From: Octopus sinensis
Taxonomy: Eukaryota
Reading direction: 5' to 3'
DNA length: 64,000 bases
Assembly (NCBI RefSeq): GCF_006345805.1
Contig: NC_042998.1
Coordinates: 147,436,001-147,500,000, forward strand
In this document: piece by piece, positions 59,547-60,506 of the stretch
Position numbering within the stretch: position 1 is the stretch's first letter
Layout of the letters: each line of letters starts with the position of its first letter
Position numbers and translations under genes: made by a program
The notes under the pieces: generated by a model
What the model was told of the DNA's origin: nothing
The model's input: the letters and a program-made list of their open reading frames with translations, nothing else
The model's database searches: none

Positions 59547-60506
59547 ATGCTTGACCCTCGTGACAAGTTAATCCTCAACAGTCTGATCTCTTTGATCGGA
59601 CTGGTGGGATTTATCGGCAACTTTCTCATCTTACGGAGTCTCATAGTCTATAAAAACATGAGGATTGCACATCATGTTGTGGTTGGAGGTTTAGCACTTG
59701 CCAGCATCCTTTACATCCTCTTTGAGATTCCTCAAACAATTGTGAACTTCACAAGCACTCGTTGGAACATCACAGATATTTGGTGCAACATAACTAACTA
59801 CATGGCACACTGCAGCCTCATTGTGGTTGCATTTCATCTTGTTGTACTGTCTATTTTAAATGCCCTCATCCTCACTAACCGTCCTAATATGATTATTTCA
59901 GGCAAACATGCCTTGATAATTGTCATCATTTTGTTTGTGGTAATTTTTACTGCTGGAGTACCATTTGCATTTGCCTACCATGTGGATAAAAGTTTGGAGC
60001 GATGTACTTTTAAACCAGACTTAGATGATGAATTCCTGCTACTCATCATCATAACTGTTTGTTATTTCTTACCCTTTGGTCTAGTTCTTATCACCCATGT
60101 CATCCTCCATTACATAACACAGCGTTTCTTTGTCGATAGTATACCCGAAGACAAGCGCAAACTCTCCCAGTTAGCTTTAGGTCTTGTCATTGCTTATTTT
60201 TTCTGTCAGTTACCCTACCATGTTGTAAATATTCACTTGCTTTATATGTTAAAAGACCCAAACATCCAGCCTAAGCAATTTATAATGTGGAATCGAATTT
60301 CTTCCTACTTGTTGTGTCTTGCTCAACTTAGTTTTTCCATTAGTCCCATCGTCTGTGCAAAACTTTCCAAAGATTTTGGCGATAGCTTCGACGAGATCAT
60401 CAACTGCACAGCATGTGTCTCATCAGGGAACCAAAGACAAGGAACTCTCAATGCGTCCACTCCATTAACCTGCTCAACTTTAATTGGTTCTGAGAATAAT
60501 GTATGA
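59547..60506 (+). CDS. Orphan rhodopsin-class (class A) G protein-coupled receptor, intronless ORF, 319 aa, atypical motifs
   Basis: Seven hydrophobic segments with class A spacing: GN (TM1, N25), LALA (TM2), WC (C80, C3.25) with ECL2 C153, YFLP (P176), CQLP (P223), SPIVC (P267), helix-8 F277; non-repetitive composition. Confidence 0.95.
   Translation: MLDPRDKLILNSLISLIGLVGFIGNFLILRSLIVYKNMRIAHHVVVGGLALASILYILFEIPQTIVNFTSTRWNITDIWCNITNYMAHCSLIVVAFHLVVLSILNALILTNRPNMIISGKHALIIVIILFVVIFTAGVPFAFAYHVDKSLERCTFKPDLDDEFLLLIIITVCYFLPFGLVLITHVILHYITQRFFVDSIPEDKRKLSQLALGLVIAYFFCQLPYHVVNIHLLYMLKDPNIQPKQFIMWNRISSYLLCLAQLSFSISPIVCAKLSKDFGDSFDEIINCTACVSSGNQRQGTLNASTPLTCSTLIGSENNV

Follow-up and report, generated by a model that had tools for sequence, protein, structure and literature searches.

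Nearly all models for the activation of class A (rhodopsin-type) G-protein-coupled receptors (GPCRs) rest on the sodium-pocket residue D2.50, on R3.50, on W6.48, and on the NPxxY motif (positions in Ballesteros–Weinstein numbering). What becomes of such a receptor when all of these are gone is the question raised by a reading frame at positions 59547–60506 (forward strand) of a 64,000-nucleotide stretch of the Octopus sinensis genome (assembly GCF_006345805.1, contig NC_042998.1, positions 147,436,001–147,500,000; this whole stretch is referred to as the window). A sequence-only reading of the locus had described an intact class A receptor lacking essentially every activation microswitch, and had proposed either a non-signalling protein, such as a decoy, scavenger, or heterodimer partner, or a lineage-specific, for example chemosensory, receptor. 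We consider it very probable that 59547–60506 is an intact gene for a rhodopsin-type receptor that is maintained by selection. Our comparisons place the protein in a family whose named members are all molluscan, and the relay residues that other members of this family keep were replaced on the stem of the coleoid cephalopods.

An Intact Gene with a Class A Fold

The frame runs in a single exon from ATG to TGA (60504–60506) over 319 codons, and it is the sole long open reading frame (ORF) of the window without low complexity; the chance expectation for a frame of 319 codons in the window, with its GC content of 35.6%, is about 1e-5. This complete coding sequence is collinear with the orthologous loci and identical in length to the Octopus bimaculoides protein XP_014769130. 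The product matches the Pfam model 7tm_1 (PF00001) over residues 24–268 with 66.2 bits against a cut-off of 30.5 bits (E 4e-18); the nematode chemoreceptor model Srsx is matched only below its threshold (14 bits vs. a cut-off of 24.1 bits). An AlphaFold2 model built from a 21-sequence family alignment reached a predicted local distance difference test (pLDDT) of 83.8 and a predicted template modelling score (pTM) of 0.82, and shows seven helices, helix 8, and a beta-hairpin in the second extracellular loop (ECL2), with an N-terminus of about 3–8 residues and a third intracellular loop (ICL3) of about six. The closest structures found by Foldseek are the ETB, NTSR1, opioid, and orexin receptors (TM-score 0.75–0.78). 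The class A anchors are present, namely N1.50 (N25), the pair C3.25 (C80)–C45.50 (C153), P5.50 (P176), P6.50 (P223), and P7.50 (P267). The intact class A-fold gene of the sequence-only reading is thus confirmed by ORF, domain match, and model; every residue named there, including these anchors, lies at the position given, and the three N-glycosylation sequons in ECL1 (N67, N74, and N81), the tiny N-terminus, and the short ICL3 agree with both sequence and model. An opsin was considered and rejected: position 7.43 is Q260 in all coleoids, which leaves no retinal-binding Lys.

Position numbers were derived from a HMMER alignment to human GALR1 together with a 31-sequence MAFFT alignment with canonical receptors. 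Under this assignment 1.50 corresponds to N25, 2.50 to S53, 3.25 to C80, 3.49/3.50 to L104/N105, 4.50 to F130, 5.50 to P176, 5.58 to H184, 6.48 to Q221, 6.50 to P223, 7.49 to S266, 7.50 to P267, and 7.53 to C270; the canonical invertebrate receptors of the MAFFT alignment have DRF/DRY, CWLP, and NPxLY in the matching columns. The class A microswitches are accordingly replaced throughout: D2.50 by S53, (D/E)R3.50Y by L-N-A, W6.48 by Q221, N7.49PxxY7.53 by S266...C270, and Y5.58 by H184. D2.50, R3.50, Y5.58, and Y7.53 form the conserved class A activation relay, and the classical demonstration that positions 2.50 and 7.49 lie close together is the N2.50/D7.49 swap of the GnRH receptor.

Orthologues in Seven Coleoids Are under Purifying Selection

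The coleoid data set consists of seven sequences: that of the window, those of O. bimaculoides, of another Octopus (from Logan contigs), and of Argonauta hians, and three deep-branching sequences (P0003-5), presumably of squid or cuttlefish (decapodiform) type. In O. bimaculoides the orthologue (XP_014769130, with an unchanged sequence under three more accessions) carries the automatic name "neuropeptide CCHamide-2 receptor" and is 97–98% identical to the octopus protein; identity is 89% for the Argonauta orthologue and 68–71% for the deep-branching sequences, which together are sister to the octopods. The receptor frame is intact and of equal length in all seven species; one ENA call of 336 residues (L008 5001–6011, protein P0004) passes an in-frame TGA, the true product having 318 residues, as in its relatives. 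Across this range of 68–97% identity the odd residues are invariant, except at 5.58 (H in octopods, Y in the three deep-branching sequences) and 7.49 (S in octopods, G in the same three). The Logan contigs are collinear with the genome and the microsatellites and A-runs at their ends lie internally in longer contigs, so they are uninformative with respect to transcription.

The ratio of nonsynonymous to synonymous substitution rates (dN/dS), calculated by the method of Nei and Gojobori (NG86), is 0.035–0.09 for every pair with an unsaturated, non-trivial dS; between the window and Argonauta dN is 0.069 and dS 1.37. In the comparison with Argonauta the only alignable DNA in 11 kb is the ORF and about 57 bases upstream of it, and similarity ends at the stop codon: the ORF is 80% identical while its flanks are unalignable. 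The purifying selection suspected by the sequence-only reading is therefore borne out (dN/dS of 0.04–0.09 in informative pairs, with the odd residues shared across the seven coleoids), and the opposite picture, of orthologues with canonical motifs and a dN/dS near 1, is not what we found, the cephalopod orthologues sharing the substitutions.

A Roughly Single-Copy Family of Molluscan Orphans

A profile of six cephalopod proteins was searched exhaustively against 1.84e9 representative proteins and returned about 25 relatives (E 2e-70 to about 1e-20) ahead of ordinary peptide receptors; the molluscan sequences scored 2e-70 to 1e-30, compared with about 1e-20 or weaker for canonical receptors. 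Every named relative is a mollusc: these are the gastropods Patella and Lottia (limpets), Nucella, Batillaria, and Plakobranchus, the bivalves Tegillarca, Mizuhopecten, Ylistrum, Crassostrea, Ostrea, Saccostrea, Mercenaria, Mya, Mactra, Dreissena, and Potamilus, and the chiton Liolophura (for example Lottia LOTGIDRAFT_228058/XP_009044045, Patella XP_050400354, Mizuhopecten XP_021360522, Crassostrea XP_022333105, and Liolophura XP_064608835). Word-index homology searches, limited to 8000 candidates, took the octopus protein and two family alignments as queries, and the matches they listed were cephalopods, oysters, and heterodont bivalves only. No further cephalopod paralogue cluster appeared in the exhaustive profile search. 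Automatic annotation has given the members conflicting names (galanin receptor 2-like, NPBW receptor-like, CCR6, ACKR4-like, PAR2-like, P2Y14-like, NPY6-like, and somatostatin receptor 5-like), as is expected for a family without a characterised member.

In a neighbour-joining tree of 316 columns the family received 100% bootstrap support, as did the coleoids, followed by the gastropods (97%) and the bivalves (94%), with a roughly taxonomic internal order; the coleoid stem is long (0.53) and the branches within the coleoids are short. Since bivalves, gastropods, and coleoids form separate clades, the family behaves as one orthologue per lineage. These sequence comparisons identify the receptor as the octopus orthologue in a rhodopsin-type family that is uncharacterised and roughly single-copy and whose named members are exclusively molluscan. 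The family is related to the groups of peptide receptors (galanin, endothelin, neurotensin, opioid, and the like) but lies outside them. The best PDB matches of the family profile are ETB (8e-31), GALR1 (1.8e-30), and NTSR1 (7e-30), that of the octopus protein alone is GALR1 (2.4e-12), and among solved structures the profile is about equally far from the ETB, GALR1, NTSR1, apelin, NPY1, chemokine, and somatostatin receptors. Given this near-equal distance to many peptide receptors, no specific orthology can be claimed, that to the CCHamide-2 receptor included, and the name "CCHamide-2 receptor" is best read as a placeholder. We also considered the "cephalopod GALR-like" clade of PMC8514136, which represents other loci (XP_014776263, XP_014775853, XP_014770415, and XP_014781588). 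The sequence-only reading had allowed for a place in a well-characterised family with normal signalling; what emerged is an uncharacterised one. The checks which that reading had suggested and which were run thus returned a molluscan family with 100% bootstrap (phylogeny), 0.035–0.09 (dN/dS), and a pLDDT of 83.8 (structure prediction).

The family is recognised by motifs that all lie on the cytoplasmic side or in the tail: LT(N/D)R in the second intracellular loop (ICL2), (K/R)R(F/Y)FxDSYSxRExRxS(R/K) in ICL3, FDE(I/V)INCTxC in helix 8, and (T/A)PL(T) near the C-terminus. Conservation across the whole family is 90% or more for residues L109, R112, R193, S198, S207, F281, D282, E283, N286, C287, C290, P306, and L307. 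In short form, the signature of the orphan family can be written LR(G/C)–C(Q/R/K)LP–RPxxY–FDEIINC. The charge reversal of helix 8 (60387–60416), acidic after F8.50 where canonical class A receptors are basic, is conserved from chiton to octopus. The octopus protein carries the family motifs, including a non-acidic 3.49 and a non-Trp 6.48. The non-cephalopod members have L/I/V3.49, Q/R/K6.48, R7.49, and D7.45, and keep N1.50, D2.50 (17/17), R3.50 (17/17), W4.50 (13/17), Y5.58 (15/17), F6.44 (16/17), and Y7.53 (15/17). The sequence-only list of lost microswitches therefore stands, in that all the residues listed are absent from the octopus protein, with two refinements: Y5.58 is replaced by H in octopods only, and the replacements at 3.49, 6.48, and 7.49 occur throughout the family and pre-date the cephalopods. 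These three are old family characters, since they are present in non-cephalopod members alongside R3.50, D2.50, and Y7.53.

The gene model is already public under placeholder names. A full-text literature search for the family accessions found no paper mentioning any of them, and we found no description of the family, or of a coleoid-wide replacement of the relay, in the searchable literature.

The Activation Relay Was Replaced on the Coleoid Stem

On the coleoid stem we count 15 fixed changes where the other family members show conservation of 75% or more; by the same criterion bivalves and gastropods have five each. The coleoid changes are Y43H, D53S (2.50), K81N, R105N (3.50), I107L, W130F (4.50), T187L, Y199I, S200P, E203K, R208Q, F217Y (6.44), D262S (7.45), A264S, and Y270C (7.53); R266 (7.49) also changed, to S or G. 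At 2.50 all seven coleoids have S, and at 3.50 all seven have N. Canonical receptors and the family agree at 24 positions, six to seven of which are lost in coleoids, all of them activation-relay residues (D2.50, R3.50, W4.50, Y5.58 in part, R6.35, F6.44, and Y7.53); nearly all other members have lost none to four, mostly through conservative exchanges of the R-to-K type. A divergent oyster sequence (P0032) has lost six of the 24, again mostly conservatively and none at the relay microswitches. The three charged core residues D2.50, D7.45, and R7.49 were neutralised together, to Ser or Gly, and this joint neutralisation suggests compensated remodelling rather than decay.

Two further changes concern the extracellular side. 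The sequon trio N67/N74/N81 is invariant in coleoids and absent as a trio from other family members, one of which (P0011) has the N67 site only. Charged residues at 32 generic pocket positions fall from 3–12 in the relatives to one in coleoids; since the count is just as low in the canonical peptide receptors of the outgroup, the uncharged pocket is not evidence of ligand loss. Taken as a whole, the shift is a coleoid-specific molecular change that coincides with the origin of the group.

Constraint Is Strongest on the Cytoplasmic Face

Within the coleoids 61% of all positions are invariant. The generic pocket is close to this value (59%), the activation core exceeds it (76%), and the generic transducer-contact positions (3.49–3.56, 5.61–5.69, 6.29–6.40, and 7.53–7.56) reach 90% (19/21). 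The most conserved segments are helix 8, transmembrane helices (TM) 1, 2, 3, and 7, and ICL3, and the least conserved are ECL3, ECL2, TM5, and TM4. Helix 8 ranks highest, with 83% of its positions invariant in coleoids and 78% matching the majority residue of the non-cephalopod members; coleoids likewise show no variation in the tail motif ASTPLTCST or in the terminal SEN-x-V. Selection is therefore strongest at the cytoplasmic face, which points to a conserved partner inside the cell.

A separate observation concerns the branch that leads to the window sequence since the split from O. bimaculoides. Seven replacements (I46V, N147D, D149S, N160D, I185V, V210A, and E243K, numbered by codon) stand there against 4–5 synonymous changes, compared with 2 vs. 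25 on the other Octopus branch (Fisher p = 3e-4). Four of the seven lie in ECL2 or ECL3. Of the 21 transducer-contact positions all but two are invariant, and V210A accounts for one of these exceptions and K/R at 6.32 for the second. This excess could reflect relaxed constraint, adaptation, or an assembly error.

Possible Functions of a Receptor without the Relay

The reading that we prefer, and hold tentatively, is that of an atypical receptor with non-canonical coupling via its conserved cytoplasmic face. The protein would be made, glycosylated, and inserted as a seven-helix receptor in which the class A relay of sodium pocket, DRY, and NPxxY is no longer usable for G-protein activation. It would act through LTNRP in ICL2, RFFxDS in ICL3, the acidic helix 8, and the S/T-rich tail with TPLT, recruiting a partner (an arrestin, kinase, or scaffold) or modulating another receptor, rather than serving as a classical G-protein switch. 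What the sequences show is that the charged trio became S2.50, S7.45, and S/G7.49 on the coleoid stem, that R3.50, W4.50, F6.44, and Y7.53 were replaced in the same burst, that three ECL1 N-glycosylation sites were gained and pocket charges lost, and that the protein has stayed nearly constant since. The non-signalling, decoy, or scavenger role of the sequence-only reading is a possible one, read from the motifs themselves.

Several points weigh against our preference. Motif loss is no proof of uncoupling, as there are receptors that couple in spite of it: bitter-taste receptors, MRGPRs, and nematode chemoreceptors. At the conserved cytoplasmic positions the residues are largely shared with relatives that still have R3.50, which would also fit the retention of an ancestral transducer, possibly a G protein. 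Nor does conservation of the cytoplasmic face identify the partner, which cannot be named from sequence because this face is common to G proteins, GPCR kinases (GRKs), and arrestins. The reading of the tail as a phosphorylation cluster would follow from its pattern only, and the squid or cuttlefish identity of the three deep-branching sequences is presumed.

Among the alternatives, a conventional GPCR is the strongest competitor and possible, if on balance unlikely; its ligand would probably be a peptide or a small hydrophobic molecule, and its activation would have been re-wired via a Ser cluster (2.50/7.45/7.47/7.49), Y6.44, and Q6.48. It is plausible because the transducer-contact positions, 90% invariant, are mostly identical to those of the R3.50-keeping relatives and because motif-poor receptor families that couple exist; the deep pocket in TM2, TM3, TM6, and TM7 is invariant as well (Q63, T83, N84, A87, L91, Y224, L256, and Q260), and the modelled ECL2 hairpin is typical of peptide receptors. 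Such re-wiring would, however, have to accommodate the joint loss of R3.50, Y7.53, and D2.50 in all coleoids, with Y5.58 in octopods added, in the face of natural receptors without R3.50 being typically G-protein-silent (PMC3072526), and variation in the outer pocket and the loops is at the background level. A distribution with constraint on the cytoplasmic face, helix 8, TM1–3, and TM7 and the lowest conservation in ECL2, ECL3, and outer TM5, would suit a ligand-independent seven-helix protein, whose fold would be a platform for cytoplasmic motifs: an obligate partner, a chaperone, a modulator of a receptor or channel, or a membrane scaffold. The loss of pocket charges, the very short N-terminus, and the three coleoid-specific predicted glycans that crowd ECL1 at the pocket entrance point the same way, but outgroup peptide receptors with a ligand pocket equally low in charge, the invariant deep-pocket residues, and the lack of a known partner speak against it, and we regard it as rather improbable.

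A lineage-specific chemosensory receptor, the other proposal of the sequence-only reading, can draw on the weak, sub-threshold Srsx similarity, on the excess of ECL2/ECL3 amino-acid changes in the window lineage, and on non-canonical motifs being common in chemoreceptors. It is nevertheless disfavoured by the single-copy status and slow evolution of the gene, and we give it little credence: the 64-kb window holds no paralogue, fragment, or array, the exhaustive search showed no extra cephalopod cluster, and there is one orthologue per lineage, following taxonomy, with a dN/dS of about 0.05 and 68–71% identity across the deepest coleoid split, the opposite of a fast birth-and-death pattern. As for an incipient pseudogene or a chance ORF, all functional motifs are lost and replacement codons exceed synonymous ones on the terminal branch of the window; the low dN/dS, the restriction of DNA alignable to Argonauta to the ORF and its short upstream stretch, and the invariance of the odd residues refute both readings, to which the chance expectation, the intact frame of equal length in seven species, and substitutions that are fixed rather than variable leave hardly any probability.

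A bolder extension of the non-canonical reading can be formulated for the wider family, and we consider it doubtful. R7.49 might act there as a built-in cation between D2.50 and D7.45, at the class A sodium site; by removing this charged core together with R3.50 and Y7.53, coleoids might have arrived at a seven-helix protein outside the class A mechanism, with a non-G-protein role, for example as a constitutive scaffold or co-receptor in the nervous or sensory system, conserved since the octopus–squid split if the deep-branching sequences are indeed from squid or cuttlefish. Regardless of which function applies, the family offers a graded natural series, from canonical relatives through molluscan orphans with the D2.50–D7.45–R7.49 core and no W6.48 to a strongly constrained coleoid form without any switch. 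Comparing signalling along this series would show which residues are indispensable and what the class A fold does without them. It also draws attention to misleading database names, such as "CCHamide-2 receptor" for the O. bimaculoides and Argonauta orthologues and "galanin receptor 2-like" and "ACKR4-like" for other members.

Feature Map, 5' Leader, and Surroundings of the Gene

With the helix boundaries of the AlphaFold2 model and the assignments of the alignment, all features lie on the forward strand. TM1 (residues 4–34, with G24-N25 keeping N1.50) occupies 59556–59648 and TM2 (residues 41–69, with S53 for D2.50) 59667–59753. The ECL1 region at 59745–59795 contains C80 (C3.25) and the sequons N67-F-T, N74-I-T, and N81-I-T found in 7/7 coleoids; TM3 (residues 77–110) follows at 59775–59876, ending in L104-N105-A106 instead of D/E-R-Y, and overlaps the ICL2 family motif I-L-T-N-R-P-N (residues 108–114; 59868–59888). 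TM4 (residues 119–141, F130 replacing W4.50) lies at 59901–59969, the ECL2 hairpin (residues 144–155, with C153 as the partner of C80) at 59976–60011, and TM5 (residues 161–194, with P176 and the octopod H184) at 60027–60128. The ICL3/TM6 start motif R-F-F-V-D-S-I-P-E-D-K-R-K-L-S-Q-L (residues 193–209; 60123–60173), the counterpart of the ICL3 motif of the relatives, leads into TM6 (residues 201–234; 60147–60248), which carries Y217 for F6.44 and C220-Q221-L222-P223 for the canonical motif around W6.48. TM7 (residues 242–273; 60270–60365) includes Q260 at 7.43, S262 (7.45), S264, and S266-P267-I-V-C270 in place of NPxxY. Helix 8 (residues 275–286 in the model) and its cysteines, D-F-G-D-S-F-D-E-I-I-N-C-T-A-C, map to 60369–60416, with the acidic FDE where canonical receptors have F-R/K-K. 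In the tail, A-S-T-P-L-T-C-S-T (residues 303–311; 60453–60479) includes the (T/A)PL(T) core common to the whole family, and the spacing of T305/T308/T311 resembles a phosphorylation cluster; the extreme C-terminus S-E-N-N-V (60489–60503) has S315, E316, N317, and V319 invariant in coleoids.

Upstream of the gene, a polypyrimidine tract with CAG (59447–59469, +) is a putative 3' splice acceptor. It is kept in Octopus spp. and Argonauta, and the deep-branching coleoid loci have an analogous (C/A)AG|AATG at this position; if it is used, the coding exon would begin about 78 nt upstream of the ATG. An upstream ATG stands at the same place in seven of seven coleoid loci (the window, L012, L001, L004, L005, L008, and L009) and opens an ORF of 2–9 codons: MLHVLSLC* in Octopus (59471–59497, + in the window), MLPVCYHFF* in Argonauta, and ATG-GTN-stop in the three deep-branching coleoids. 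In the window this ATG comes directly after the polypyrimidine tract and CAG (59447–59497). Despite near-saturated synonymous sites, Octopus and Argonauta share the block TGACATTCCA, at about -51, without any difference. The segment 59447–59497 looks like a 3' splice site followed by a conserved upstream ORF of putative function in a presumed 5' leader.

A tblastn search of the 64-kb window with the receptor protein gave no paralogue remnant, and Pfam searches of the neighbouring ORFs, a tRNA scan, and an Rfam scan of the window gave no match. At 31282–31692 (+) there is a non-repetitive ORF of 136 residues (MSAQKRKRTEFTLKEKEII...) without a Pfam match, which may be what is left of a mobile-element protein or a product of chance. 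A dispersed repeat of about 100–180 bp, detected via matches to the O. bimaculoides flank (L012 8991–9156 and 8499–8664), is present in more than 15 copies, for example at 5433–5608, 23005–23362, 25617–25723, 30895–31000, 47133–47237, and 54669–54831. TA/CA-type microsatellites are very abundant in the window and yield long spurious "YIYIYI" ORFs.

Comparison with Known Systems

The octopus receptor shares with the non-cephalopod molluscan orphans the family motifs, L/I at 3.49 and Q/R/K at 6.48, the short N-terminus, and the short ICL3. The orphans differ in keeping D2.50, R3.50, W4.50, Y5.58, F6.44, and Y7.53, and in having D7.45, R7.49, and a charged pocket, whereas the coleoid form shows S, N, F, H (in octopods), Y, C, S, and S/G at these positions, a single pocket charge, and three ECL1 sequons. 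To the CCHamide-2 receptor, whose name RefSeq has given to the O. bimaculoides and Argonauta orthologues, the likeness is that of a class A peptide-receptor-like sequence; the nearest relatives are the molluscan orphans, and not specifically receptors of the CCHamide, bombesin, or endothelin type. The galanin, allatostatin-A, endothelin, and neurotensin receptors provide the closest structures and canonical sequences and share the ECL2 hairpin and the C3.25–C45.50 pair, but one-to-one orthology is lacking, as many peptide-receptor families score alike, and, unlike the octopus receptor, the canonical invertebrate sequences nearest to it carry DRF/DRY, CWLP, and NPxLY.

Among receptors with a known non-classical mode of action, the atypical chemokine receptors (ACKRs) and C5aR2 bind ligand without G-protein activation and are arrestin-biased or scavenging. 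The ACKRs generally keep D2.50, CWxP, and NPxxY, all of which are gone in the octopus receptor. A specific sequence kinship is also missing, chemokine receptors being no closer to it than ETB, GALR1, NTSR1, or NPY1R. In atypical chemokine receptors with altered DRYLAIV motifs there is no classical G-protein signalling, and in ACKRs and C5aR2 alteration of DRY alone is associated with its loss (PMC3072526, PMC10405735). The octopus receptor resembles them in its class A fold, in its altered R3.50 motif, and in being kept by selection (PMC3072526, PMC10405735), and the S/T content of its cytoplasmic face and tail could serve arrestin recruitment.

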